Part shown: piece by piece, positions 13,295 to 50,939 of the stretch | Layout: every line of letters begins with the position of its first letter | Position numbering within the stretch: the first letter of the stretch is position 1 | From: Trichosphaerium sp. ATCC 40318 | Taxonomy: Eukaryota > Protista > Tubulinea | Length of the DNA: 64,000 nt | Direction: 5' to 3' | NCBI GenBank assembly: GCA_038496445.1 | Contig: JALMLS010000343.1 | Coordinates: 1 to 64,000, forward strand | Program-made: the position numbers and the translations under genes | Notes under the pieces: generated by a model | Database searches by the model: none | What the model was told of the DNA's origin: nothing | Seen by the model: only the letters and a program-made list of their open reading frames with translations

Positions 13295-15850
13295 TTAAGG
13301 TACTCTTTCATAGCCGTCTGATTTGCCGCCGAAGAAGCAACAACAGTATACTAACAACATCACAATAACAATCGCAAAAATTATACCGAGGACAATACCG
13401 GCAATAGCGCCAGCACTTAGAGATTTGGCTAACAAAAGTAGTTAAAAAGGATAATCACTTTCAAAAATTGTGTAAGCAAGCGTACATGTAGGTGCTGTAG
13501 TTGGCACCTCGGTGGTAGGTGCCAGAGTAGGTGGATGTATGGGTGCGATTGGCGGTTGAACTGTTGGAGCAACTGGTTGTATTGGCGCTACAGGTTCGGT
13601 TGTAGGTGTTGTTGGAGCAACTGGCAATGTCGGAGTAGTTGGTTCAACTGGTGTTTCTGTTGGAGCAACTGGTTGTATTGGAGCTACAGGTTCGGTTGGT
13701 GTTGTTGGTGCGATTGGTGGTTGAGCTGTTGGGGAGGAAGGTGCGGTTGGTGCGATTGGGGGTTGAGCTGTTGGGGAGGAAGGTGCTGTTGGTGCGATTG
13801 GGGGTTGAGTTGTTGGGGCAACTGGTTGTGTTGGAGCTACAGGTTCGGTTGGTACTTCTGTAGGTGTTGTTGGAGCAACTGGTGATTGTGTAGTTGGAGC
13901 AATTGGCAATGTCGGAGTAGTTGGTTCAACTGGTGTTTCTGTTGGAGCAACTGGTTGTATTGGAGCTACAGGTTCGGTTGGTACTTCTGTAGGTGTTGTT
14001 GGAGCAACTGGTGATTGTGTAGTTGGAGCAATTGGCAATGTCGGAGTAGTTGGTTCGACTGGTGTTTCTGTTGGAGCAACTGGCTGTGTTGGAGTGGTTG
14101 GTTGAGCTGGTACTGATGTTGGAGAGACCGGGGATACAGGTTCAACTGGAGTTGGTGAGGTTGGTACCGATGGTGAAGTTGGTGTGGATGGAGCGACCGG
14201 AGCAATAGGAGAAGCACTTGGAGCAGTTGGAGATGTTGGAGTACTTGGGGCAATTGGTTCTGCTGGTGATACCGGTACTATTGATGGTGACGTAGGTGTT
14301 CCAGGGGATATTGGTGCACTAGGGGACGATGGTACTATAGGAATAGGCGCAGTGGGGGATGCTGGGATGGCGGTTGGTGAAATGGGTGCCACGGGTGTTG
14401 AAGATGGTGCTGTTGGGGTTGCAGGTGCAGATGGACCAACGGGCTCTTGAGTAGGTGCGACAGGTGCTACTGGTGCGCTGGTTGGAGCAACAGGAGCCAT
14501 AGGAACAGCAGTTGGAGCCACGGGAGCTACAGGAGCCACAGGGGTAGCTGGAGCGTTAGGTGCGGTTGGTGCGGTTGGTGCAACGGGTATCAGAGTGGGT
14601 GCAACAGGAGCTACAGGAGCCACAGGAACGGCAGTTGGAGCTACAGGGGCCACAGGAGCAGCGGTCGGTGCGACAGGAGCCACAGGCATCTGAGTAGGGG
14701 TGACAGGTGCCACTGGCACGCTAGTAGGCGCAACAGGAGCCACGGGAACATCAGTTGGCGCGACTGGAATAACGGTTGGCGCCACGGGCATCTGAGTAGG
14801 AGCGACAGGTGCTACAGGAATCTGAGTAGGTGCAACAGGAGCTACTGGTGCGTTGGATGGAGCAACAGGCGCCACAGGAACAGCAGTTGGGGCCACAGGA
14901 GCCACAGGGGCACTGGTTGGAGCCACAGGAGCCACAGGAATCTGAGTAGGTGCAACAGGTGCTACAGGAATACCAGTTGGAGCCACAGGAGCCACAGGAA
15001 CGGCAGTTGGAGCCACAGGAGCCACAGGGGTAGCGGTTGGAGCAATAGGCGCCTGGGTAGGAGCTACAGGAGCACTAGTTGGCGCAACAGGTGCTACAGG
15101 GACGGCAGTTGGAGCCACAGGAATCATGGTAGGCGCTACAGGAATCGCAGTTGGAGCCACAGGAACCATAGTTGGTGAGACTGGGGTAGCAGTAGGAGCT
15201 ACAGGAGCCACAGGAACGGCAGTTGGAGCTACAGGAGCTACTGGTGCAGTAGTAGGTGCAACAGGAGCCACAGGAACGGCAGTTGGAGCTACAGGAGCCA
15301 CAGGGGCAGCGGTTGGAGCCACAGGGGCAGCAGTTGGAGCAATAGGTGCCTGGGTAGGAGCCACAGGAGCCACAGGAGCAGCGGTTGGAGCTACAGGAGC
15401 CACAGGTGTAGCAGTTGGAGCTACAGGAGCCACAGGGGCAGCGGTTGGAGCTACAGGAGCTACTGGTGCAGTAGTAGGTGCGACAGGAGCCACAGGAACA
15501 TCAGTTGGCGCGACTGGAATGACGGTTGGCGCCACGGGCATCTGAGTAGGAGTGACAGGTGCGACAGGTGCAGTAGTAGGTGCGACAGGTGCGACAGGCG
15601 CCACAGGGACAGCGGTTGGAGCCACAGGGGCAGCAGTTGGAGCAATAGGCGCCTGGGTAGGAGCTACAGGAGCGCTAGTTGGCGCAACAGGAGAAGTTGG
15701 CGCAACCGTAGTTGGGGAAACTGTGGGTACTGTGTCGTTAGCACCTAGGAGACAGTTAACTAAATGACAAGACCAAAAAAAAAGAGGCCATACCACCACA
15801 CCAAAATTCTGGGTTTGGAATGCAAAAACTACAATGAATCTCTCCTAATT
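13295..15850 (-). CDS. Mucin-like Pro/Thr/Val/Ala-rich type I membrane protein (5' exons unresolved)
   Basis: About 750 aa of PVAPT repeats; spliced last exon [42 protein letters not shown] (TM, Cys cluster, YxxV); upstream Cys-containing exon [14 protein letters not shown]. Confidence 0.8.
13500..15725 (-). repeat. Coding repeats ([13 protein letters not shown] units plus larger duplicated [25 protein letters not shown] blocks)
   Basis: Periodic ggagccacag/ggagctacag motifs. Confidence 0.9.
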
Positions 15851-19900: not shown

Positions 19901-21453
19901 CGCAGCCATTACCACCCAGGCGGTAGCTTCTTTGATATACCTCCAGAAGAGGTGTTGAATTCGAAGCAGGTTATTGTGACAACATGTGCAAGCGCCGGTC
20001 TACTGGTCAATCTTCCTATCCTGAGAGGACAATTCACACATATTTTTATTGATGAGTCCGTGCAAGCTCTCGAACCAGAGTGTATAATCCCATTGGAGTT
20101 AGCTGGCCCAAATACACAAGTACGCAGCATTAATACACGTAATATATTGTTTTGACGGTAATTGGTAGGTTGTGTTAGCTGGAGATCACATGCAACTCGG
20201 TCCAATAGTGCGCTCGCCAATAGCGATAGAACTAGGATTGGAAGTTAGTCTACAAGAGCGCCTCATTAAAACTGCAGCCTATCAACAAGTACAATATTAT
20301 TTGTTACTTTAGCGCTAATATTAGCAACTAGGACAGCACAAAGCGCCATTGTATAACTAAATTACGGAGTACGTTAGCCATGATTCCAGAGCTTTTTACT
20401 AATTTAATATTTTCCAGGAAACTACAGATCACATCCCGTCATTGCACAAGTTCCCTCAGCACTATTCTATAATGTACACAATTATCGATCATATATTATC
20501 TAAGTACTAACATGTAATGTTTCAGAATGAACTCATCAATGTGGGTAACCCTAATACATCTGAAGCACTGAGAGACTGGGAAGAACTCAAGGATTCTAAT
20601 GGCTACCCTATTTTGTTTTATGGTGTAAAAGGTGTAGATAAGCGAGATGATGACAGTCCCTCATTTTACAACCCTCTCGAGTGTATTAAGATAGCGGATG
20701 TTGTAGAGCGTCTGCTACAGAGCAAAACAATCGATGTCAAAACAAGCGATATTGGAGTAGGCTTTTTTTCTTTTTCGATCGTGGTTCCTTACTTCTATTG
20801 CACTAGATCATTGCACCTTTCTATAAACAAGTTAGAAAGATACGTGAACTTCTACGCCAACATCAACTTGGTGCTGTCCGAGTTGGTAGCGTGGAGGACT
20901 ACCAAGGTACTGGCGCTAGTTTTTTGAAAACTTTTTTGTAAAGAATTGTTTTTTTAGGTCAAGAAGAAAAAGTGATTATCATATCAACAGTTAGGTCTAA
21001 TGATAGATGGCTTCCTCTCGATTTTAAACAAAAACTTGGATTGATTAATAACCCAAAAAGATTTAACGTAGCCATAACGCGTGCGAAGAACTTGTTGATT
21101 GTTATTGGCAATCCGGCAATCCTTGAAAACGTATACAGATTTTTATTCTATTTTATGACTTGCGTATTTGGCTAACTTATCGCCCAGGATATGTGCTGGC
21201 GACAGTTCCTTCAGTCATGTATTCAAAACAACGCCTACAAAGGTCCTGAGTTTACGTTCTCAAATATGAATGCAGAAGGTCCACCATATTTAACTCGTCT
21301 TTATTCATAGCGCTAACCTTTGGAATAGAAGTCACCATTGAAGAAATTGACCAAAAGGCGAATTGGGGAACACTTGGCGCAGGGTTAGATATGACAGAGG
21401 AATACTATGGCGGTATTAATTGGGCTGAGAAAGAGTGGCGCATAGATGTGTAA
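16913..21453 (+). CDS. MOV10/SDE3/Armitage-like SF1B RNA helicase, multi-exon (start uncertain)
   Basis: [15 protein letters not shown]; VPGLPQKRP; [13 protein letters not shown]; HIFIDES.QALEPE; [10 protein letters not shown]; NYRSHP; SPSFYNPLE; VEDYQGQE; [10 protein letters not shown]; ends EKEWRIDV*. Confidence 0.9.
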
Positions 21454-34934: not shown

Positions 34935-35178
34935 ATACTGTCCAGTTCCTTTGTTTCACGTATCCAAAGGGACTCAGTACAGAGAATTACCCATGTGCCG
35001 AAGAAAGAACTTGGCTTTAGGATGTGGGTATCAACTGCTAGCGTCTCCTAAAATAACATTCAAATTGTTTTTGCCAGTGTCTCTGAGAGCACATTGCTTA
35101 AAAGGAAGCTAGAGAGCCACGCCACCAAACATAACCTACTTTTATTGAATACAGAACTAAATTGGAATTGAGGAGCAT

Positions 35179-35472
35179 TCAAATCACTGCGTGTGACCTC
35201 CTGGAACCTGCACGTATTAAAAGGTTATCAATGAGTGTGTCGCGTACCTTAGGAACTATAACTATTTGCTCTTGTTCAGAACAATTCTTTAACGCGAGCG
35301 TTTCGTTATCTCCCAGATCAGTGTTTAGATCCGAGAGCACAATGCTTTCCACTTCTTTATTCCACCATGCGTAAACCATCCTCTTGAGGTCTTTACCAGT
35401 TACCGAAGCTTGAAGACGTACAACCTTCGATTTATCTAGGCATATGATACTGGCGTGGACGTGCATTGCCAT
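35179..35472 (-). CDS. Ubiquitin-like (beta-grasp) domain protein
   Basis: VVRLQASVTGKDLKRMV..IVLSDLNTDLGDNETLALKNCSEQEQIVIVPK fits the UBL pattern T..DLK / L.D..TL / I..V. Confidence 0.55.
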   Translation of the reverse strand: MAMHVHASIICLDKSKVVRLQASVTGKDLKRMVYAWWNKEVESIVLSDLNTDLGDNETLALKNCSEQEQIVIVPKVRDTLIDNLLIRAGSRRSHAVI

Positions 35473-35545
35473 TGTCGTTGGAATAGGATTTTAGTTCCTA
35501 CGCTAGTCAATAATGGTAAAAAAAAACCCTCCAGTTCCTTACAGC

Positions 35546-37607
35546 ATGTCTTGGGAAACAAGAGACCACAAATATTCTAACATAGGTACTTCACAATATA
35601 ACCTATACACATAACGAATCTTAGGCCTTACATGTTATGTTAATGCTGCTCTTCGAGCTCTAGAACCGTTTTTGTTCAACAAGAATCCAGAAAAATCGCA
35701 TTGCAGTCGTATTCTATCAGATTTTTTCAGCTCTAGGAACCCAGTCCGCGCACGTGCGTTTTTTCCGTTGCAAATGTTAAGATGATTGTAGTACTACAAA
35801 CAAGAACTGGAGAAAGCACTGAACATCAAAGAGCTTAACAAAGCGTCAGATGTGTCTGTACGAGATGTTGGCGCCGAGGTTCTAGCTAACCTGGTTACCT
35901 TTGTCTAGACATTTTTGCAAAAGCTACTACTCACTGGTGGTCCCTACTTTTCAGATTTCCAAATTCGCAACTTCCAAACAACGCGAACCTGTAGCAGATG
36001 CTTGAGAAGTTCTACAAGGAAAGCTAGGGAAGCCAATTACAGAATAGTGGTGCCTATTGAGAAAGAAAGAACTATAGATGAGGCATTGCGGAGGTTTCAG
36101 TTTTCAGAGCAAAAATATTTTTGTAGCTACTGTTGTTCTACCACTATTCATCGAACAAAACGAGAGTTTGAATCAACAAATCTTGTCATTGTACGCTGCT
36201 CATGCTACCTACAATTGTGACTAAAGATAGGTGTTGCCACAATCCACAAACGAAATACAGAGCAGACCCGAATTGGGTCCGAAGATTAATGTGAGTTTTG
36301 GGAGTGCATCACTACAGTACAACCTGGTTTCCACTATTCTATATACTTCCTTTCATTTTATCACACGCACGTACAATGTAGAAACAGGGGTAAGGAAGGA
36401 TCTTTTTTAATCGTTGAACCTTTTCGTAGATGTGTATGGAACATGATGATAGCCGCAGTTCAAACTCAGCGTATAACTACACTGGAGCTCCTGTGGTTGT
36501 GATATATCAACAGCTATCAAAAAGTGTAGTTATTGACACTCGAAGTTTATCGCAGCCTGCTGGACTTGAAGCCGCACAACCTAACCTTATTGAAGAAAGG
36601 GGGCACGCCTCGCATCAGAAATATCCTATACCGCATCTTCGAAAAGGCGTTAAACAAAAAGAGAACTCATTTTCAGGTGCCGCCAAAGTTGTGCTTACGA
36701 ACTTTGAGCACGACTCAGGTATTCATATTAATTGCTCAGTCTTTTTAACCAACCTAGACTTTTTTCAAAGCTTGAAAGAATTATTTCTCGGATACGCTCA
36801 TAGGATTCATGACAGCACTGACACAAAAGCAATTTTGGATTTTATGGAATCTCGACGCAAAAATTACAAAAGGAGGTACAAGTATCACGTTTTATCTTTG
36901 TTTTTTCTAAACAATTTTCTAAAAATAGAAACAACCACTTTGTGTATTTCTGGGTAAAGTGTCTTCTTGATAACAAGTGTGACTGTGACCAAGCACTCGG
37001 CATGATCAACAAGAAGTTTCAAAATGATATGGATTTCTCTCTATACAATCTTATCGAACTTCATAGCACAAACGCGTTTTACTATACTTCTAATGATCCA
37101 AGTAAATATTTGACTGTTATTGCTCACAAGGCACTTAGATCGTTAAATGATTCAGATCTGGCTTTAGTGAGGGTACTACTTCTAAACATACTTTGCGCTG
37201 ATTCGAAATGTAGGATGGGGGAAACAAAGACTGTTTAACCTGTCTTAGGGATACTTTCAAAGATTTGGAGTCTGTTCTCACATACCGTGACAAACGGAGT
37301 CTAGCAAAGGAGTTTCTACGCTATAAAAATTATTTACATGCCAAGTTCGTTTTACAGAGCCTGCAAAGTGACGCAGTACGCATCTCCACTTGTCAAAGTT
37401 AATTTTTTTCTATCAGTCAAATAATAGGGAACTTGAAGAACTTGCAAGTCTCATAAACAGATGTGACATACCAGTCTGTCACTTGGTAAGCCCCTTTTGT
37501 TATTAATTATCTCACCAATTTAGTTACCACCGAGTATACCCACTATTGCCTCTATAGTTCATAAAGAGAACACATACCAAGAGCGGCAAGGCTATTTACA
37601 ACAGTAG
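35546..37607 (+). CDS. Divergent ubiquitin-specific protease (C19) with C-terminal extension, multi-exon
   Basis: Cys box NIG|LTCYVNAALRAL; zinc ribbon CSRC..CSYC; YNLVSTILYTSFHF..EHDD (His/Asp box). Confidence 0.7.
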
Positions 37608-37793
37608 AAAACTAACAACGATGGTAGATCAAGATCAGTAGCAGCCGTCTTAAGACTCCAAAAAGTGTACTACCACTTTGGCACGTATGATGATGGAAAT
37701 ACGTTTAACTATTGATAATTGTGTGTTGCAAAATAAAGGTTTTTTTCAAAAAATTGTTGTTACTGCCGTTTGGTATTCAAAAGGAAGATGTAT

Positions 37794-39618
37794 TTAGCTA
37801 AGAAAAGTTTGCTCTCGTTGTACATAAGTGAGCATTACAGGAACCCCTTGAGTCGGAGGAGTTGCTCTTACAACAGATCTATCATTACATTCATACCAGA
37901 CATTGTCATCTTTCGTGTATGCTATGTAGTGACCGCAGTAATTATTACCAAAGTGAATAACTACAGACACAAGATCGTAGATTATACTGTGAGTATCACT
38001 GAGCTTGGTGATTTGGTGTGAAAGAGTAAAGGGAACTGACGTATCACCTTTTGGAATGATTAGTATAAGTACTTTGCAATCGAAATCCCTGCGCGTAATG
38101 TGAAGTGTGAATTCTGGATCTGGACTTAGATTAGGAGCTGGCAAAGGCGGATGAATTTCAGGGATTCCTCTGGTATTACGCTTTCGCTTTTTCGATTTTT
38201 TTGATTGTTTTCGTTTCCTTTTCTTTGGTTTTATCTCCATCTTTCTCTTTTGGTTTGCTAATTCATACTCGCTCATCTTTTTCTCGTGACAAGCAAAACA
38301 TATTCTTTTTGTATCACTACACATAAACGAAAGAAGTTTTTCGTCTACCGATAGTCCTTCACAGTCAGTTAGTCATGGCGCCAAGTTTGTCGACTATGAG
38401 TTTTTGTACCTTTGTTGCTTACTACCAAGAAGTTATTAGCTTGTGGTGCTACTCTCACAGTCTCTTTATTACAAGTAGTACACGTGTGCGTAGTTTGGAA
38501 GTTCTTGATTCTGAGCATATCCAAAAAACGCGGGTCTTTGCTATCAATGTATTTAAACAGCCTTTTGAGAAAAGACTGCAAAGCTGTTAAGCATTGGAGG
38601 TTATGTATTAAATTGCACTTACACTGGCATCACTCTGCTTTCGAAGGTTCACATTGAAAACTCGCTCCAAAGCAGAAACAAAGCCCTAAGAAATACGACT
38701 AGGTTAACGACAGTGCAAGTAGCTATCAGTACGTACACGTATTCCAGACGGATTACTGTACAAATCAAGCATACGTTGAATGATGCTATCAGCGTGGTAT
38801 GTTCTATCACAGAAAATAGGTCTTGTTGCTTGGATTGCTGACGCCAAATAGCATGTATTGCCCTGGTTAGAAAATCCTTCATGTAAACCAGTGTTCACTG
38901 TACTTCTGTGTCCTGAACAATCGTTAGTTTCGCAAGCATTTTAGTGTTTACTCTTTGGTTGTTTATCAATAGTTGGTTTTCGACAATTGCCTTCAGGAGT
39001 GTAGTAGGGAAGGAACAGCTCTTGCCAATACGCAGCGTCTAAAAAGGTAAAACAAGTTGACTTTGTTGGCCCTTCTTCAACTTTCGCATCAATAGTAAAC
39101 GTCTGAGCATCATGAGCAACTGTAGTTGATGAAGGTTCGGTTGAAAGTTGAATCACGAGCGGTTCTAAGCAAAGATGTATAGTATGTTGGTTATTTTTTT
39201 CATGTTTAATACACGTGATTAAGCTTAGAGATTGAGCCGTTGGTGTTGTTTCAATGTGTTGTGTAGGTGATACTACTTCTACTGGTGCTGGTTGCGATAT
39301 TATTGTCACTGGCGCTACTGGTTCCTCAAGTGATACTACTGGTTCCTCAAGTGATACAGGTGCTGCTAGGTTCACTGGCTCTGAGAGCTGTACCAGTTGC
39401 TTATTGGTTCCTGAGTTGCTGTACGTATTGGGTTTGTATTTATGCTAAATTTCGTTAGATTGATGGTACATTGCGTCTACGTCTACTACCAAGAGCTTGG
39501 GATTGCTATCACAACTTTCTGATGTTTTCAGTTCCTGTCTGTTACGACAAGTTTCGCGTATTCCTACTCCTCCAGCCGGTTTAAAACTGTCACCAACTTT
39601 AACGTGAGCCTCAGTCAT
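37794..39618 (-). CDS. Divergent ubiquitin-specific protease (C19), paralog of 35546-37607, multi-exon
   Basis: GFSNQGNTCYLASAIQA; YDLVSVVIHFGNNYCGHYIAY..WYECNDRSV; shared I(K/R)NFQTT.TC..C motif. Confidence 0.85.
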
Positions 39619-39714
39619 TTAGTTGTAGACGCTTGGTCAGTTTTTAGTGGTGGCTATTTTGTTTTATTGATTTGCGACTTAAGCTCAGCCACGTGTGGTG
39701 GTAGCATGTAATGT

Positions 39715-42700
39715 TTAACTAGGCTGGGAACTCAACTTTACTGAAATTGGAATAGCAGGCAACGGTAGTACTAATTTGTATTAATGTCGTAGCTAATAGC
39801 TTGTTTGAACTCTATTTCGTAGTCGTTTGTTAGCTCTGCAGATATCTAAAGTTGTTAGAGATTAAACAAATCACGTTTTCTATGTCTACTCACTTTTACC
39901 CACTTTACATTTTCTAACCCCAAAGGCGCTTTACGTCCAACTATGGCATCTAACAACCTTAAAAAAAGTCACAAAAAAATATTGATTCTAGATAGCGTGC
40001 GTTTTATTCTCATCACTATCTTTGCTCCAAACAAGTTTGTTGTCATAATATATCCGGTCCACTTCTACGCTGTGATTTTCTTGTATAGATTTTGCTATCT
40101 CCTTAAGTGTTGACCCGGGTGAAGCTCTGGTTTCGAATACGTGTCCATCTGAAATTGATTCTGGATTTTCAAGCGAAGGCTTTTCAATAGTACGTGGCTC
40201 TATTAGCAAGAAAATTAGTGCGTTATGCTTAAAGGATTTGTAGTACTGCGCTTGTTTAGCATCCTTACTGAAAGATCAAATGTTATTGCTTCTAAGCCTT
40301 CTACACCTCCGAGAAGCTTGTTCACTCGTTAGTACGCAGTAGTGTTTGTAAGTAGTACCTTGAAGATTTCTATGCATGTGAATCCTGCCGTTATCGCAGT
40401 AGTTGATATCAACGCTTGCTGTACTTTACCAGCCACAAGGTAACAAAAAAAAAATTAGCAAGGTTTATACTTTGTCAACTCACGTGTCTATTAATGTGCT
40501 GAGTTTTGGTAAATCAAAGCACGAAATGCGCATATTACTTAATGAATGAATAAATTTTAAATGAGTGTGGTTGTTCTATTGACCGTTAACCAACATTTAC
40601 AAAAAACTGATTTACCTTATCAAATTCTACGGGCTTCTTGGTAGCGATACAATTTATCATGATTGCTGAGCATGCATTGATAAACTAAAACATACGTCAA
40701 AGGAATAAAGCAACGCATTAAAGGGTGTACCATTTTGTAGTCTGGATGTACAAGTGCATCAACGATATGAGGCATAACACGTATGCCAGTCCAAAAAGGT
40801 ACTTTTTATAGATTAGTACGGAGTCAACACATCGAACTATACCTTGAGGATTTTCCGGATCTTTCTTATCAGGTGGAAATTCTGATAACATTTGTTCGAT
40901 ATCTCCCTTCGTGTACTTCTCAGCCATCTGTTTAGCCCATTCTGGCACTTGACGGCACTCTTCAGATTCGAAATCTTGGTATAGCTAAAAAGGATTTATT
41001 GAATGCTGAGGCATACTCACTTACTTTAATAATTTTCGCTGCTTCTTCGCCAGCCATCTTATCGTTGTTACAGTAGACATCCACGTGTAACATGAATAGC
41101 GTTTCAAATTGGTGCACAGCCCACTCAACTATATGACTACTCAAATACGGGAACCTTTTGTCTATACAACCAAAAAGCATCTCAGAGCCACCTGACACGA
41201 AAGGTTCTGTCTTGTAAGGTAGGACTGTCGAAAATTAGTTACAGCGGGTTATTCTTTGGTCTCGTACTTGGACTTGAGGTCCCAACAAGTCCTGCTGTAC
41301 CGCTATTTATAGCAGGGATGTTGTAGAAATGGCACATTTCGTTCAAAAAAGCACGTGCTTTAAAGTTATCAACTGCGAAAATAACGAGATCAAGATTTTC
41401 CCAAAACTCGCACGGAAACAAAGGCCATCCTAAAATACTTTAAAAAAAGACTGTAATACTTATCCTACGTACTAGTAGTTTCTGATACTTCTGAATTAAA
41501 TATTTCCATGTTTATACTACTGTTTATAGAACGCACCGCTGCAGCTGCTGCAGTACTTTTGTATTTGCCAACATCTCCTTTTTTGAATAAAAATTGGCGA
41601 TGCAGATTTGAATCCTCAATGATGTCGGGGTCTGCAAGGAAGATCTTACCATTTTCACCACAACCAATACCTAAATATCATCATCAAACTGAACGTAAAG
41701 AGATAATCTGTACCTTCTAGAGCAAACAGTTTTAAAAACTCACACCCAAGAGCACCAGCACCAACAACGAATACTTTGGCATTCATTACTCGCTCTTGTA
41801 TTGCGTCTCCATACACAAGTCGTTGGCTGTAGTATCTATCCTAAGCTAATTATAAGCCACTAAAAACCGTAGCAAGTTTCGCACGTTCTGGACGTTTTGA
41901 TGTTCAGGAATTGTGAAAGAGTTATTAAAAAACTGCCACTGGTGTATAGGCGCATAAACTCCAGAGCATCCTTTCAGAACTTCCGTTGAAGCAAATCCTG
42001 CAATTATAGAAATCTAGACTTGTGAGAAAAACAAAAAAAAACCTCAGGCGCACGTGTGATGCCAAGGAACCAACACAGATTAGAGAATTCATCCAGGCTT
42101 CGTCGATTTCTTCTGAAGGTACTGAAAATATGTTTTTCGCAATTTGAACAGCTTCTGCTGATAAATCTGAGGTCGAAGCTGCTCCAAGCTTTTCACAAGC
42201 TAGAAGCAAACTACAAATCAAAACGTTATGCCACTTTGTAGGACCTCTCCTAGACGATGTAAATCATGTATTTTCTCGAAATATTCCTTGTACCTGGCGC
42301 CTCTGGGTCTTTGTTGATTTAAACATGCAAGATTTTCCGTTAGAGAGTTCTTCAAACAGAGTTAGAAATAAAATTCTTCGTAGTCTCTAAACGCACGAAT
42401 TTGATAGTATTGAATATTGGTAATTGTTGATAAACACCTCCACCAGTGTACTTTTCAAACGTGGACGTATCAATACACAGGTTGAGTGTCTTCGAATCCT
42501 CAACTTCAACAGATTGTATAACCCGCCCATTGAGTTCCACCATACCTTTTACGCCGCTAATTCGTATGGGACCACCATCAATTTCCAAAGAAGGTGCAGC
42601 GACGGTTAACTTTGAGGAACTATCCTAAATCTTACTTTAATTTACGTTACGCATAAGTTCAACGTACGTTTGTGATATTGGCAATTGGTTGAGTAACGTA

Positions 42701-43439
42701 AGATGCAGTTCCTGTTTTTTGCTCGTATTTGTATTCATCACCAAAATCAACAAATACGCATCCAACAAGACCACGACTTTCTGCGCATACGAACTTTACG
42801 TTACACTCTCTGCATTTTTCATTCAGTAAAGATACTTCTCTCAATCCTTTGTTCGCACATATAACAACCTAATAAAGTCAAATACGAGAAGGAATACTTG
42901 TTATCACATCGTAATCGCGTATTTCAGATGGTTTCACAGCTTTCAAATCCAGTTCAGTGCACGTGGTTATTGTTTGCTTAGTATGTTGTACCATTGCTTG
43001 TAACTTTGATATACAAGCGATACGCGGCGCTCCTAGTGCTTCAAAGCCAAACTAGTAGATTTAGTGAGCTAAGCCAAATAAACGGCAACACATACATTAC
43101 TGGATTGATCATTACGCGTAAACAGTTCCCCATCGTCATGTATGGTCATATGTCCAACGCCACAAAGTAGCAGATTTTTTGCTTCCAGAATCAGCATTCA
43201 CGCCTCATTATACAATAAACGCACCTATTTCAACGCCTAGACCATCTAAACCGCATAGCAGAACCTAGACAGAACTCACCATTACAGGTACTGCAGCAAC
43301 TACGTTACCTTGCATTCTTTGAGAATCTCAACGTTGAAAATACTTCTCCTAGAGAGGTTCACTTGTCAGTTCCTTTTTATTTCAAAACAACGCACTGGCG
43401 AGAGTAGTTTATATCATCAGGAGACAGAGAGACAGACAT
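39715..43439 (-). CDS. Divergent UBA1/UBA6-family ubiquitin-activating enzyme (E1), multi-exon
   Basis: YSRQ; VLLCGLDGLGVEIAKNLLLCGV..TIHD; RGLVGCVFVDFG; DRYYSQ..VFVVGAGALGCEFLK; DPDIIEDSNLHRQFLF; AVDNFKAR; SGTAGLVG; catalytic Cys in FGCIDKRFP..HIVEWA..FETLF; ALISTTAITAG. Confidence 0.9.
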
Positions 43440-43492
43440 GATGTATGCCTGTGCTTCGTTTTAAATAGAGCTGACTTAGCCAACAAAACAAA

Positions 43493-43991
43493 ATGAGTCA
43501 GTTGAGAGCAACAGACAAAGCTGCTGTAAACAAGGTCTTAAAGAACTGTATAGCCTATGTACGTTGTTTTATTACCTTCACTAATTACTAACCTAGTTCC
43601 TAGAGGGTTAACTCGAGCAAAACTTTCCGTGTTCCCAGTATTAGGGCTTGTCCAAAGTGCCATGGGCTAGTACAAATTACAAAAGTCCCTAGTGGCGGCT
43701 CAATGATATACGCTTGGTGAGTACTCTCTATTGCGATTAAAATCCTAAACCAGCTTCTCTAGTAAACATACTGGTACAGGCTGCCCAGGTACTTTGTTCG
43801 ATACACGTGAAAATCCACTAATAGAGTTGGTTTAGGTTGTGGTTCCTACTTTTGCTTCGCTTGTTTAGCGTTGAAGAGCAGTTCGGGTTGGCCTTGCGGA
43901 GGCCCATACGATAATTGTGGGGTAAGAAAAACGACTTTTAACAGGAACTCCACCTAATTTACTGTAGATGAAGCCAAGGCAGGTGTTGTAA
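43493..43991 (+). CDS. Small stand-alone RBR RING2/IBR-like zinc-binding protein (~100 aa), multi-exon
   Basis: Predicted splice gives VPSIRACPKCHGLVQ..YAC..KH..CPGCGSYFCFACL..GWPCG..C..KPRQVL*. Confidence 0.65.
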
Positions 43992-44420: not shown

Positions 44421-45667
44421 TTATGGTTTGAAACCTGTTTGCTTGCACCAGTCCTTGAATGATGTCAAAGGCGCTGCTTTTACTGAAATATCAGTCTCAG
44501 GTCTACCAAAGTATTAGATATAATAAATTTGTACCAATAGGCATACCCGTAGTAGGTGTAGTCTTCAAACCATTGAAACATGTTTGCCATTTCTTCACCA
44601 GCGAATGATGCAAACCTGGTTAAATGAATAAGTGAAGTAAATAATGTTTGTCTCTTACACTTTGTTTGGAATAAACTTGCAGCCGTAGTTTTCACCAGTT
44701 ACTTCGTTTAATTGTTTGATATAATCCGAAGGATGCATATGCTCAGCTGCAGTTGGTACAAACTTACCAAGATACTTTTCCTTGTTATTAAGAATCTAAA
44801 AATAGAACGAATATTAAGCTCAAATAAAAAGAAGCTCAGAATAAACTTTTTAAACATACCTCAGCAACGTAAGCACCAGTATTCGTGACATCAAAGGCAG
44901 TGATGTAAGCTTTCTCAGAGAATCCAAAAGTGAAGTACTTTCTACCTATCGACGATTGTCAATGTAATTGTAAGTCAAAAAGAGTTGAACACTTACCATC
45001 TTTTTCATCTAACTGAGGCTTGAAATGTGTCTCGAAGTTTTGAAAGTAGAACGCTGGAGAAAAGTAGGTTGCTTTGAGACTTGTTGTACGTATGTACTCC
45101 TCAACAAGTGCTTTGTTGGTGAAATGAGCAACGTGATACTTTCCTTTTACGAATTTCTCAACATTCGCAAGGCTTGACCAAATATAATGCTCCACACCCT
45201 CTGTAGATATGATGAGAAGACGAAGAACTTGACAAGATTCTTTGCACCTTTAATGGCGATATCTGCTATTGCTTTTCCAATATCTGCTTCTTTCTCAGCC
45301 ACAGAAGGATCCCATGCGTTCAAGTTTGCGAATACTGCGTAGGCACCTTTAAAAGCGGCTTTTAAGGCAACTTCATCGTTTACATCAGCTTTAACCATTT
45401 CGACGCCTACAATAACAATGAGACAGGTGTCACTTGCGTGGATGCGTATAAGCCAACCTTTTGCAATTAGGGCCTTAGATCTATCAGAATCAGGATTTCT
45501 TGTTGTGCCTCGTATTTTCCATTTATTGCCGTCAGCTTGAAGAGCACTAATTACAGAATTTCCTGAGGAGAATATGATTTAGAGTTGGGTTGGTTTTTTT
45601 GGTTAACATTTAGCTACAACAAACCTTGTAATCCAGTGGCGCCGAATACGAGTACGAGTTTTGACAT
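44421..45667 (-). CDS. NmrA-like (NMRAL1/HSCARG-type) NAD(P)-binding protein, multi-exon
   Basis: VLVFGATGLQGNSVI..RGTTRNPDS..GVEMVKADV..AFKGAYAVF; WSSL; HFTNKALVEEYIR; FYFQNF. Confidence 0.9.
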
Positions 45668-46106: not shown

Positions 46107-49100
46107 CTATGTCAAGTTGTTTTTTTTTCCTGTTTTCCGTTTCTTTTTTGTATGTTCTTCTGATCCGTTGACAGCCTTTCGTTTTTTTGATGGCACATCC
46201 TCAGTTCCTTCACTGTCAATTGACATTGCATCACCTTTATCTTCACTGGGTTTTTTTTTTTTTAGTTGTTCTGTTGTGGCGCTGTCATCGTCAGAGTCAT
46301 AAGCTGTATCTTTTTTCTCTTTTTCCTCCTTTTCTTCAACACCGTTCTCTTGCCCATTAGATTCTTCTTTTGCATCATATCTAAGAGAATTGCATTGCTC
46401 ACACATAGGTAAGAAGATGCTATTCAAGAAACTACAAGCTCCACAACTCCATCGACCCTAACAGTGAGTCAACAACCAAACACAATGACAAGCAATTGTT
46501 TTCAAAAAAAAAAAGACACAAACTTACATCAGAACTTCGTCTATTGCTCTTCTCGTCAGTCTTCATTTTAGGAGGATTGCTCCCTAGAATCTATATCAGT
46601 ACAACGTACTAAACTAAAAACCCTAAAACCGCACCACCATTACTTGAGGATCTTAGTAACCGCGTATTGGCAAAACCAGCATCAGTCTCATTCCTTGTCA
46701 TGTCTAACAAAAATAGGAAAATTAGCAAACTGTCGCAGGATTTCTTTTGTTGTCTTTGTCCGAAGGTTAACCCAAAAGAAAAAATACGCACATATGAATT
46801 GCTCATCCATTGAAGATAAATCTTGTTCTTCAGTCTTCATCAAAGATATAGTAGATGATGTAGTAATACCACATTCGCCAAGAGTCTTATTATTATCCAT
46901 TATCGGTATACTATCAACCAATAACATTTGCTGATTAGGTGGTAGATCAATTATCTCCATTAACCTCATTTTTAGAATATATAAAGTATCTGTATGTGAC
47001 ATGCCAACAACTTCAAACTCTTGTCGTCTGGTTTTTGCTAAAAGAAAAAAAAAGTGAGAAAAATGTTCAACGTTCAGAGATGACAAGAAACATCTTCAAG
47101 TGGTCTTCTACTTACTCCTACGAGATCTAGTTTTTCGACTAGTTTTCCATTCTATAGTAAGTGTATCATCTACAAATTCTACAGGTTGTTTTGTTAATAT
47201 TCAAATGAAACCCTCTTATCTGTTGTGTTTTGTTTTTCGAATGGGAAAAAATCTACTGTACCTGCTTCAGTTTTAGCTTGCTCCTTCCTACGAGCTTTTT
47301 CACAATCTGGACATATCCCAAAGTTCTTAGGATGTGCTTCATTGGTTTTATAATCCAATATAGCACATTTATGACCGCTATCATCAAAATAGTGTCCATC
47401 AACTTTGAATTTAATCTCAAATGCAGGATTTTCACATGGATAAAACTCCTTGAGCGTTCTATACTCTGCAAGAATCATTGTTGTAAATAAACTATTTTCT
47501 GCATTGAAGTACTCTCCAAAGTTATATTTGAGTGATCCATGCTCGCAAAAGTAATCTTCGGTCCAAGGAGAGACTGCAAATAGAAAAAAATCAATACCCA
47601 AGTTTAAGATGACTAAAAATAAAATTGGACTCAAAATAAAAGGTACGTACTATCTACAATCCCACTGGACGGATCATCCAAAAATTTTAACCAAGCAACT
47701 GCAAATTCATAATCCACTATAGCAAATTGGGAGTTTGCTTTCGGGACAGGTACTTGAAACTCATTCCTGTAAATCGATTTAACTTGCTTGAAGTATGCGG
47801 AGAATTCGTTTTTTTCAGCTATTGCACGTTCTTCTAGTTCTTCATTTTGTTGATCTTTCTGTTCTTTCTCGACCATACATTCATTACATCCTTCAACTGT
47901 ACCAGCAAACTCCAAATGGTCTTGTTTACCATAAGAAATATCTCTAATATACGCCCAAGCCTTGAAAAGGAAGTTAATCTCTTAAAAAGATTCTCATTCA
48001 CTTCACGTGCCTCTTGTGGAATAAGCCTTCTTTTCCGCTTGTCTGCAACCAAATTCTCATGTTCACATTGTATATCATGATTCAGAGCAACAAGCTTTTC
48101 CTTATTCGGCCGCTTTTTCTTCCATTCTTTTGAAAAAAGTCAGTTACGTTTCAAAGAATAAAAATATCGTGTTATCTCGTACCATTAAAAAACTTTTTGG
48201 ATATCCAGAACGCTGTATCCTTTTCTATTTTTGCACCACCAGTGAGCTTACATGCCTCTAAAATATCACTCTTAGTGTCAGCACGTTCTTTTCTTGAGTT
48301 TAGTTCGCTAAAATAAGCGCTGACACAGTCTCTACAAAATGACTCCTCGGTGAACACCACAGGCCCTGTATTATATTTTTCAACTAATAAATCCCAAGCA
48401 CTCTAGTACAAATGAGCCTTGGCACTCAAAAGAATAAAATTGGAAATAGAAAAACTTCACAACGTACGCGGCTAATACGTTTTATATCATCGCATTTGAG
48501 AGGGTTTAACTTATGATGTTCACATTCTAGTAGTGTATTGTCAATTGGCCCAACATCCAGACCTTAAATTTAATATTAGATTACTATTGCGACAATAAAC
48601 TATTCACCTCCAATCCACTTCTTGAGCCATGCTACAGAAATAAAATTACATGGTCATCAAGTTTTTGTGGGCCGTCTTGTCGGACTACTAGCTGTGGCCA
48701 TACATCCTAGATGAGAGTAAGTTCGCGAACTATCAAAAGAGGTTAACCTAAAACTATGTACCTTTACAAACTTTTTATGCTCAGCAACTTTGGCTAATAT
48801 GTCCTTTACTCTCTTGTCATATACTTTGCACTCGTTGATTAGAGCTTCATTAGACTCGTCAACAATGTCTTGTATATCTTCAGGTAATACTGGTACTTTT
48901 GCAGCGCGACCAGCTCGCTTTACATACGATAACATATACGCATTTCCAGAAGCCAGATGCCTGGTATAAAGTTTGATAAGTCGATGGTTCTACAGGCTTT
49001 TCACTAGACATACGCATCATCTACTTTACTGGCACTATTCTTTGTGGCTCTGACCTTCTTTGGTCGCTTGTTTTCATTTTCCTCATCCTTGTCAACATCA

Positions 49101-50939
49101 TACAAAGAAGGCTTTTTCTTCTGAGCTTGTGCGTCATCAAACTGCCACCACTCTCCTGTACCACTATCAAAAATGATTAGATACACTAAAAAGATATAAA
49201 AGTACGTACAGTTCTTCCCTCACTTGAGCTTTGTAGTGACCTAGGGTTTTGAGATTAGACTCATCTCAAACAAATAAGTTTTTTCTTTTATCATCTTACC
49301 GCCATACGCATTAGTGCCAATATGCTGTAAAATTGCGACTAGTTCATATATACATTCTTCTTCGTCGTTTTCTACATCATCTTCCATGAATGGGGTCATA
49401 TTAAGTGTCAATGGAAAGTAAAGGACTTTTCTTAGTTTCTTTTTCATATTTTTCTCCATATCGTATTGAAATCGAAGGATTTGTACGTTCAGTACCTACT
49501 TGCATAATTAATACTCAATACCATAGTACCCCAAAAGTATTATAACTCATACTTCTGGTAACTTTGTTATTCTCCTTCGTCTCTTTGCATCAAAGTACCC
49601 ACCACAATGACCACATTTGTACTTGTTATCTCCAACCAAGTCTTCCTCTCCAAAGGTTTGGCCAATACACTCTTCTAAGTTTGTTGCTTGTAACCGGACA
49701 TCAATCTCAGAAAAATCTTCAGCTCGTAAAGACGAGGTATTACAATTTGAACAGACTGTTTCATACTGTGATGTGCCCTATAATTTCGTTGTAAGATTTC
49801 TAGACATACAACTTCAAGTCGTTGAAAGTGCTAACACTGGTAATCGTTTTTTCTTAGTATTTAATCACGTGTTTGATCTTGCACAGAGGCCTTTGGACTT
49901 ACCTGGAATTGATCCTTAATGAGCGTTCTTACAGAATCTTTTGATGATTTCTTTAAAGCCTTCTCAAGGTACTGCATTAACACTTTGTAAAATCTACCAT
50001 TGGTCGATGTTAGACTATGTCGACAGGGCATAAAAAAAAGAAAATCATTTGGTCTCATTTATCACGCACTCTTGAGCATCCTGCTGAGCTCCTGTTTGTA
50101 GTTCTAGTTTGTCAGCGAATGCTTTGGGATCATAATAACTCTTATTATACCCTTGGAGATGCCCAAATAACACTTGTAGCTCACGAACTATTTTATCATT
50201 GTTCTACAAATCAGTATAAAAAAAACATTTACCGCGTTGTACCTCGCTGTTATCCCAATCATAAATGCCCTGGCGAAAGGCAGTATTCGCATACATACTC
50301 TAAAAAGGTGTTAGGGCGATGACACATACTTTTTTTCAGAAACTGTTATCACACCTGTAACAAAGCATTCATGTAGCAAGTTGCACCAAGATTCTGCAAG
50401 AACGTTAAGAACAGTGATAAGGATGAGCAGGTAATGATCCGCACCTTCAAGCCAATGCAACCATTCCCATCCCGCAAGCTTTCGTTTGGATTGGTAGCAG
50501 GGACAGACTTTGCCAATGCCGTGCCTGGCTTTCCATCACCATAACCAACGAACCAGTTAGGATTGTATTTGTATGATCTTCTCTTGCCTAAATAACGGTA
50601 AAAGTCTGCCTAAGAGCTAATTTATGACTACACTATAAAATGCTGAAACAGTTACACGAAAGAAGTGTAAAATACGAGTTTTTAGAGCAAAATAAACGAT
50701 TTTAGTTCGTAGAAAATCTGTTGAGCTGCTTTTTCGCCACAGTACGTTATAGAAAGTGTATTAACGATTTTGCGAGTCTTTAACACGAAAAAGCGCAATA
50801 TTGTACCTCCAGGCACCGCTGGTTCATCAAATATATGATAGAGCTCTCCAATATGCTCGTCGGTTACTTGATCGACCCCTGTAACAACGGCAAGTTCCTT
50901 GCCCTTCATAGGTATCTCAGTAAACGAACGTCGCTTCAT
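46107..50939 (-). CDS. USP48/UBP26-like deubiquitinase (USP, DUSP-like regions, C-terminal UBL), multi-exon
   Basis: NPNWFVG; GLKNLGATCYMNALLQ; QQDAQE; YELVAILQHIGTNAYGGHY; WWQFDD; SGNAYMLSY; CEHHKLNP; CEHGSLKY; UBL TLYILKMRLME..PPNQQML. Confidence 0.88.

Follow-up and report, generated by a model that had tools for sequence, protein, structure and literature searches.

A compact locus of Trichosphaerium sp. encoding a divergent UBA1-type activating enzyme, two USP proteases and a small Gly-Gly-ended protein: a candidate ubiquitin-like conjugation module

Results

A cluster of genes related to the ubiquitin system

Five tightly packed genes were found at positions 35184-43991 of a 64,000-nt stretch of DNA (hereafter the window) from the protist Trichosphaerium sp. 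ATCC 40318, corresponding to positions 1 to 64,000 of contig JALMLS010000343.1 (GenBank assembly GCA_038496445.1). They encode, in this order, a small candidate ubiquitin-like (UBL) protein (minus strand), two proteases of the USP family, USP-A (plus) and USP-B (minus), a divergent activating enzyme (E1) of UBA1 type (minus) and a Cys-rich micro-protein (plus) (Table 1). It is in our view an even prospect that this locus constitutes a lineage-specific UBL conjugation module that arose from duplicated ubiquitin machinery and comprises a dedicated E1 of UBA1 descent as well as two USPs serving maturation and removal of the tag. A preliminary description, made from the sequence alone, had already claimed this gene order and orientation, and both were read again from the sequence. 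It had also attributed all five genes to the ubiquitin machinery, which homology upheld for the E1, USP-A and USP-B but not for the RING2 assignment of the micro-protein or the fold of the UBL. Its proposal of a parallel conjugation system now draws on the Gly-Gly end and tail of the UBL, the divergent E1 with intact motifs, the two USP paralogs and the splicing of four of the genes; the RING2 call and the UBL fold are putative, and the suggested link to defense or stress is conjectural.

Transcripts

The gene models were settled by manual curation, guided by RNA joints, by open frames and by conserved motifs. RNA contigs were compared with positions 35000-40999, which cover the UBL, USP-A, USP-B and the 3' third of the E1. 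Spliced cDNA contigs from two small public runs (X1 and X2, from two studies), with at least 99% identity to the genome, covered four of the five genes: UBL, USP-A, USP-B and E1 are transcribed and spliced. Introns supported in this way numbered seven in USP-A, one in USP-B, nine in the E1 and one in the UBL gene. In one run, letters of a SMART-type adapter at 35541 marked the 5' end of a USP-A cDNA, 5 nt before the ATG; the adapter letters indicate that the contigs are cDNA, and the position of this end that the 5' untranslated region (UTR) is nearly absent. Three RNA-supported introns have nonstandard ends (37586-37627, 39958-40000 and 40444-40483). They comprise GC-AG introns, one in USP-A (37586-37627) and one in the E1, and an E1 intron reading GT..TG on its own strand with an unambiguous joint. 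Allelic differences (four synonymous and five non-synonymous) were too few to judge selection.

The activating enzyme

Identification of the E1, proposed from the sequence at the outset, was confirmed by Pfam and PDB matches of its exons. The FCCH exon scored above the cutoff in Pfam (E1_FCCH, E = 1.1e-11) and matched the FCCH domain of UBA1 in PDB (E = 1e-4), while three exons matched ThiF (Pfam E = 3e-10, 3.6e-7 and 2.3e-7). The UFD was matched weakly, with E = 7e-4 to 1e-3 (Pfam E1_UFD, 20 bits for a cutoff of 25), and the SCCH gave weak Pfam matches below the cutoff (0.005 and 0.13) in two consecutive exons, at consecutive positions of the profile. Compared with PDB sequences, the adenylation exon matched human UBA1 at E = 3e-15, scores falling in the order UBA1, UBA7, UBA6. 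The model holds the nucleotide-binding motifs GAGALGCE at residue 415 and DPDIIEDSNLHRQFLF at residue 444, followed by the Lys and the Asp-Asn, and its Cys570 (FGCIDKRFP) aligned with the region of UBA7 residue 599 (Cys599) and with a mouse UBA1 SCCH fragment. Taken together, the protein looks like a complete UBA1-type enzyme with intact catalytic motifs, and is predicted to be competent. The gene had been thought to end at 39988; in the RNA its frame runs on through a GC-AG intron to 39771. Support for the nine 3' introns consists of eight listed joints and a loose end at 40984 matching the end of exon 14, and the other 13 introns were modelled from the reading frame and motifs.

The SCCH domain is short and very divergent. 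Between Cys570 and the motif at which the adenylation domain resumes lie only about 137 residues, a spacing that is presumably shorter than that of UBA1. HMMER comparison of the exon carrying the catalytic Cys with 1.84 billion representative proteins returned no true relative, and none was found on metagenome contigs; for the corresponding exon of a housekeeping UBA1, thousands of relatives would be expected. Two HMMER matches of this exon were rejected: both are repeat proteins, with scores built up from some 13 and some 8 matches that each reach no more than roughly 6 bits. A word search with the FCCH and adenylation open reading frames (ORFs) gave no candidates, a blank weakened by its length filter. 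All five genes had been described as more divergent than their housekeeping neighbors. For the E1, the divergence far exceeds that expected of a housekeeping UBA1; USP-B is canonical. Activation of the neighboring UBL, rather than of ubiquitin, is the candidate role of this enzyme.

The two USP proteases

Both proteins announced as USPs proved to belong to this family. USP-B matched Pfam UCH in its last exon (E = 5e-13) and in the exon of its Cys box (E = 0.004), its His box matched USP47 and USP15 in PDB, and both boxes are canonical (GNTCY and GHY...ND). USP-A, for which exon-by-exon Pfam comparison returned nothing, was recognized from its BLASTP similarity to USP-B (33% identity over 149 aa, E = 1e-16; His-box segment E = 5e-5) and from a match of exon 4 to the finger region of USP46 (E = 0.003). 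Its Cys box reads GLTCY in place of GNTCY, so that the Asn of this box is lacking, and in its His box (FHF) the loop before the catalytic His is shortened by four missing residues; the Asp is kept (HDD). USP-A is thus aberrant in its predicted sequence, yet keeps the catalytic Cys, His and Asp, and both putative proteases retain the catalytic triad. Its 3' end was corrected, as RNA carries the gene to 37715, and the C-terminal part of about 310 aa had no match.

As judged from their alignment, USP-A and USP-B are paralogs, and since their intron positions differ, the duplication is not recent. A cDNA contig of USP-B from run X2 (38736-39444), in which the intron 38913-38951 is removed, lacks 21 nt at 39315, inside the VSLEEPV repeat, an in-frame length polymorphism of seven residues. 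Processing of the UBL is the candidate role of both enzymes.

The small Gly-Gly-ended protein

The UBL gene had been described as an unspliced ORF of 97 aa. In cDNA of both runs, a 40-nt GT..AG intron (35208-35247) is removed, and a loose end GTGACCTCCTGGA at 35246 corresponds to the far side of this intron; the product is corrected accordingly to 82 aa ending in VPGG-HTQ. With a Gly-Gly and, after it, the three residues HTQ as a tail, the spliced C-terminus has the layout of the precursor of a ubiquitin-like modifier. Gly-Gly-His was seen in RNA, while the two final codons and the stop were read from the genome. In both runs the UBL contigs break off at one and the same base, 35193, after 15 nt of exon 2; this coincidence suggests a branch of the assembly graph caused by a variant or an alternative form.

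In an AF2 single-sequence model of exon 1, made with no alignment, the predicted elements (strand 4-13, strand 16-25, helix 26-37, helix 55-62 and strand 69-74) fall at the places of ubiquitin beta1, beta2, alpha1, short helix and beta5, at low confidence. A ubiquitin fold is thus putative for this protein. An ungapped alignment can be made between its 32 C-terminal residues and positions 45-76 of ubiquitin, to be read as a lead only. Kept in it are Leu50, Asp52, Thr55, Leu56, Asn60, Val70 and the Gly-Gly, with a Lys in place of Arg72 and a Val in place of Leu73. BLASTP comparison with the ubiquitin-family domain encoded in the same window gave no match, and scans of viral and metagenome contigs revealed no relative. 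The unspliced ORF returned nothing in an exact look-up and in a word search, the latter blank being weakened by the length filter.

The Cys-rich micro-protein

As modelled from its open frame and GT..AG ends, with the same end (43991) as in the preliminary description, the gene at the far end of the cluster is predicted to encode nine Cys in about 60 residues (C37-x2-C40-x19-C60(KH)-x6-C67-x2-C70-x4-C75-x2-C78-x10-C89-x6-C96), including a CGSYFCFAC stretch. This pattern, read by eye, resembles that of IBR/Rcat domains, although a generic zinc-ribbon is equally allowed. The preliminary assignment to RING2 of RBR ligases was not confirmed: it depended on the same reading of the Cys pattern, and no RBR or IBR match was found when exons (37 and 28 aa, the domain being split over three exons) were compared with Pfam and PDB. 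The tripartite RING1-IBR-RING2 arrangement is absent, as the 104-aa model leaves space for a single zinc domain of about 60 residues. The best matches were CxxC motifs at chance level; among them, the top PDB match, of exon 2 to the DnaJ zinc finger (E = 0.0019), was rejected, since its score is made up of four weak hits to a single CxxCxG motif. A role of the micro-protein in the pathway is putative.

Organization of the locus

The window is eukaryotic and contains numerous introns of about 40-50 nt; its G+C content, about 39%, is equal within the cluster and in its flanks. In base composition and in their introns (38-53 nt), the cluster genes match neighboring genes, which indicates that they are resident. 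Both head-to-head pairs of the preliminary description were recovered, with start codons at 35472 and 35546 for UBL and USP-A, and at 43439 and 43493 for the E1 and the micro-protein. The stop codons of USP-A and USP-B are 78 nt apart, and 152 nt separate the stop codon of the E1 from the start codon of USP-B.

Table 1. Features of the UBL/USP/E1 locus and of its vicinity (positions in the window)
Feature	Positions	Strand	Remarks
Orphan UBL-like gene	35184..35472	-	Exons 35472-35248 and 35207-35184; 82 aa, ends ...IVIVPKVPGG-HTQ, stop
Divergent promoter region UBL/USP-A	35473..35545	.	73 nt between start codons
USP-A	35546..37715	+	12 exons, 564 aa; USP domain at residues ~10-250, then ~310 aa C-terminal
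USP-B	37794..39618	-	6 exons, 531 aa; low-complexity N-terminus of ~210 aa (VSLEEPV repeat), then USP domain
Divergent UBA1-type E1	39771..43439	-	23 exons, 905 aa, no internal stop; introns 39-48 nt
Divergent promoter region E1/micro-protein	43440..43492	.	53 nt between start codons, from sequence
Cys-rich micro-protein	43493..43991	+	5 exons, 104 aa; open frame across four GT..AG introns of 45-47 nt
USP gene with C-terminal ubiquitin-family domain (USP48-like)	46688..49459	-	Pfam ubiquitin and UCH; 5' limit provisional

The mapped RNA ends leave little intergenic space. The UBL contig extends to 35492, at most 48 nt from the mapped end of the USP-A transcript (35541), and RNA of the E1 3' UTR extends as far as 39678, leaving no more than 59 nt to the start codon of USP-B on the same strand. 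Owing to this proximity, either the promoter of USP-B overlaps the 3' end of the E1 gene, or both genes are co-transcribed. Co-regulation of the cluster, as previously proposed, is suggested by the very short divergent promoters of the UBL/USP-A and E1/micro-protein pairs, which would couple expression. The 9-mer TTGGAATAG occurs at 35478 (UBL/USP-A promoter), at 39747 (upstream of USP-B) and at 21320, that is three copies in the window for 0.67 expected; with 3 of 100 shuffles reaching this count, it was not convincing as a shared promoter motif.

Next to the micro-protein, the cluster is adjoined by an NmrA-like gene (Pfam NmrA, 44959-45398) and a Lys/Glu-rich ORF, then by a further USP gene. 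This USP48-like gene, already announced beyond the cluster, was confirmed about 2.7 kb further on by Pfam matches to the ubiquitin family (E = 3.4e-10, 46688-47086) and to UCH (E = 1.6e-7, 49241-49459); it lies two genes away, its membership of the cluster being uncertain. Unmatched ORFs and a carbamoyl-phosphate synthase gene occupy the opposite flank. Elsewhere in the window, an open frame of 785 aa on the minus strand (13442-15799) has a G+C content of 56% and a GC skew of 0.32, as against about 39% G+C for the window. It had no Pfam match and is possibly a low-complexity or repeat-rich gene.

Discussion

Proposed pathway

If the locus is a conjugation module, the following sequence of events can be proposed. 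USP-A, USP-B or both would trim the 82-aa precursor after Gly79 (VPGG|HTQ), and the E1 would adenylate the exposed Gly-Gly end and form a thioester with it at Cys570. The UFD of the E1 may then hand the tag to an E2 whose gene lies outside the locus; transfer to the neighboring micro-protein is another possibility. The tag would finally be joined to lysines of target proteins, from which both USPs could also remove it. A bolder variant, which we consider highly doubtful, sees in the cluster a minimal, self-contained cascade. The micro-protein, as a stand-alone Rcat-like protein, would replace both E2 and E3, receiving the tag directly from the E1 as a thioester on its spare Cys60 and passing it to targets, with the USPs maturing and recycling the tag. 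Cys60 is followed by x-His, as in the catalytic domains of RBR ligases.

Part of the argument for a module is based on the rarity of its components. Among the enzymes of the ubiquitin system, E1s represent less than 1% and USPs about 6% (PMC3670738). As a rough estimate, in which the USP pair is counted once, the chance occurrence of a UBA1-type E1 beside two USPs and a Gly-Gly-ended mini-protein would be well below 1 in 1000 per genome. Adjacency of such rare elements is therefore unlikely to be fortuitous.

Several observations nevertheless weigh against a UBL module. The UBL had no relative in Pfam (E up to 10), among PDB sequences or in a word search. The model of its exon 1 reached a pLDDT (predicted local distance difference test) of 50, and Foldseek comparison of this model with PDB returned chance-level matches only, so that the ubiquitin fold initially attributed to it was not confirmed. 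The final nine coding nucleotides of the gene and its stop codon, and with them the three-residue tail, come from the genome only. The HPN motif typical of E2 enzymes was found in no frame of the 64-kb window, in agreement with the earlier statement that no E2 was recognized there. Gaps were short wherever RNA ends were mapped, showing a genome that is compact throughout, in which tight spacing alone means little. No relatives or conserved synteny were found for the UBL, the E1-specific exons or USP-B in protein collections, on viral contigs (scanned with USP-B and the UBL) or on metagenome contigs (scanned with the UBL and the catalytic-Cys exon), so that conservation of the linkage is conjectural. 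Finally, the E1 could be simply a second ubiquitin E1.

Alternative explanations

This last point leads to an alternative that we regard as unlikely, though far from negligible. The E1 would be a fast-evolving second ubiquitin E1, i.e. a UBA1 paralog, and the USPs ordinary deubiquitinases, brought together by local duplication and shared regulation, while the Gly-Gly protein would not be a substrate, but an unrelated orphan or a partner of USP-A. The exon scores, which rank UBA1 above UBA7 and UBA6, are consistent with such an enzyme, and so are the close alignment of the adenylation exon with human UBA1 (E = 3e-15), the resemblance of USP-B to a canonical ubiquitin protease and the low confidence of the UBL fold. 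However, a second ubiquitin E1 leaves unexplained why a protein of about 80 aa, encoded head-to-head with a USP, should end in a Gly-Gly and a tail, and why the SCCH and catalytic-Cys region of the E1 should be so extremely divergent. The absence of family matches for the UBL and the micro-protein, the weakness of the common 9-mer and the tight spacing seen wherever RNA ends were mapped would fit still another view, according to which the cluster is a chance neighborhood in a gene-dense genome, with independent genes, a small ORF devoid of ubiquitin fold and a micro-protein that is a generic zinc-ribbon. We hold this to be improbable: an E1, two USPs and a Gly-Gly-ended mini-protein directly follow one another, another USP lies 2.7 kb from them, and each of these enzyme classes is rare in eukaryotic genomes (PMC3670738 and our own estimate).

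Recent acquisition of the cluster, for instance from an amoeba-infecting giant virus, with its own ubiquitin-like toolkit, would account for its divergent sequences and for the lack of cellular relatives in any search. Such an origin is scarcely credible, as the G+C content equals that of the flanks, four of the genes (USP-A, USP-B, E1 and micro-protein) carry 4-22 host-type introns each and the UBL gene one, those checked by RNA being spliced, the viral contigs contained no relative, and the E1 appears to display the full architecture of eukaryotic UBA1.

Significance

A new ubiquitin-like modifier that has an activating enzyme of its own is seldom discovered, and ISG15, FAT10 and UFM1 have each opened a field. 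Under the reading of the locus as a dedicated UBL module, the position of the genes points jointly to a candidate tag, to the E1 likely to serve it and to two candidate proteases, which makes the pathway testable with a few recombinant proteins. After trypsin digestion, modified lysines would moreover carry a VPGG remnant (+310.164 Da), distinct from the GG remnant of ubiquitin and hence searchable in proteomics data. Should the linkage be coincidental, the locus would still harbor an expressed and extremely divergent UBA1 paralog. Literature searches revealed no comparable cluster described from amoebae, and physical clustering of genes of this kind is unusual in a eukaryote.

Comparison with known systems

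The closest analogies are offered by the ISG15/UBA7/USP18 and FAT10/UBA6 systems, in which a UBA1-derived E1 of full architecture (IAD, FCCH, AAD, SCCH and UFD) serves a lineage-restricted Gly-Gly-ended tag, either exclusively or as a shared enzyme. The E1 described here keeps the same domains and motifs, its UFD being putative. A USP-family protease is specialized for the tag in the ISG15 system, and the likeness to the present USPs is one of analogy. Unlike ISG15 and FAT10, the putative tag is a single orphan domain of about 79 aa, with no detectable similarity to ubiquitin, ISG15 or FAT10, and its gene is adjacent to those of the enzymes, whereas the vertebrate genes are unlinked. With housekeeping UBA1, which provided the best PDB matches, the E1 shares the domain order, the ATP-binding motif, the context of the catalytic Cys and, putatively, the UFD, but it is limited to 905 aa and has no N-terminal extension.

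The micro-protein can be compared by eye with the IBR and RING2 (Rcat) domains of RBR ligases, through CPxC ... C-x-H ... CxxC-x4-C-x2-C and CGxxFCFxC. Its nine Cys would suffice for two zinc sites, plus a spare Cys at the place of the catalytic Cys of Rcat. In contrast with these ligases, it stands alone, with neither RING1 nor a second zinc domain.

The layout of the locus recalls operon-like arrangements of archaea and bacteria. Ub-E1-E2-RING-Rpn11 operons of Caldiarchaeum type and UBL-E1-E2-DUB defense operons of bacterial Bil type have short E1s and JAB-type proteases, and include an E2. The likeness lies in a tag, an activating enzyme and a protease encoded side by side. The parts assembled in Trichosphaerium sp. 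are, by contrast, eukaryotic (a UBA1-type E1 and USPs), rich in introns and separately transcribed from divergent promoters, with no E2 in the window.

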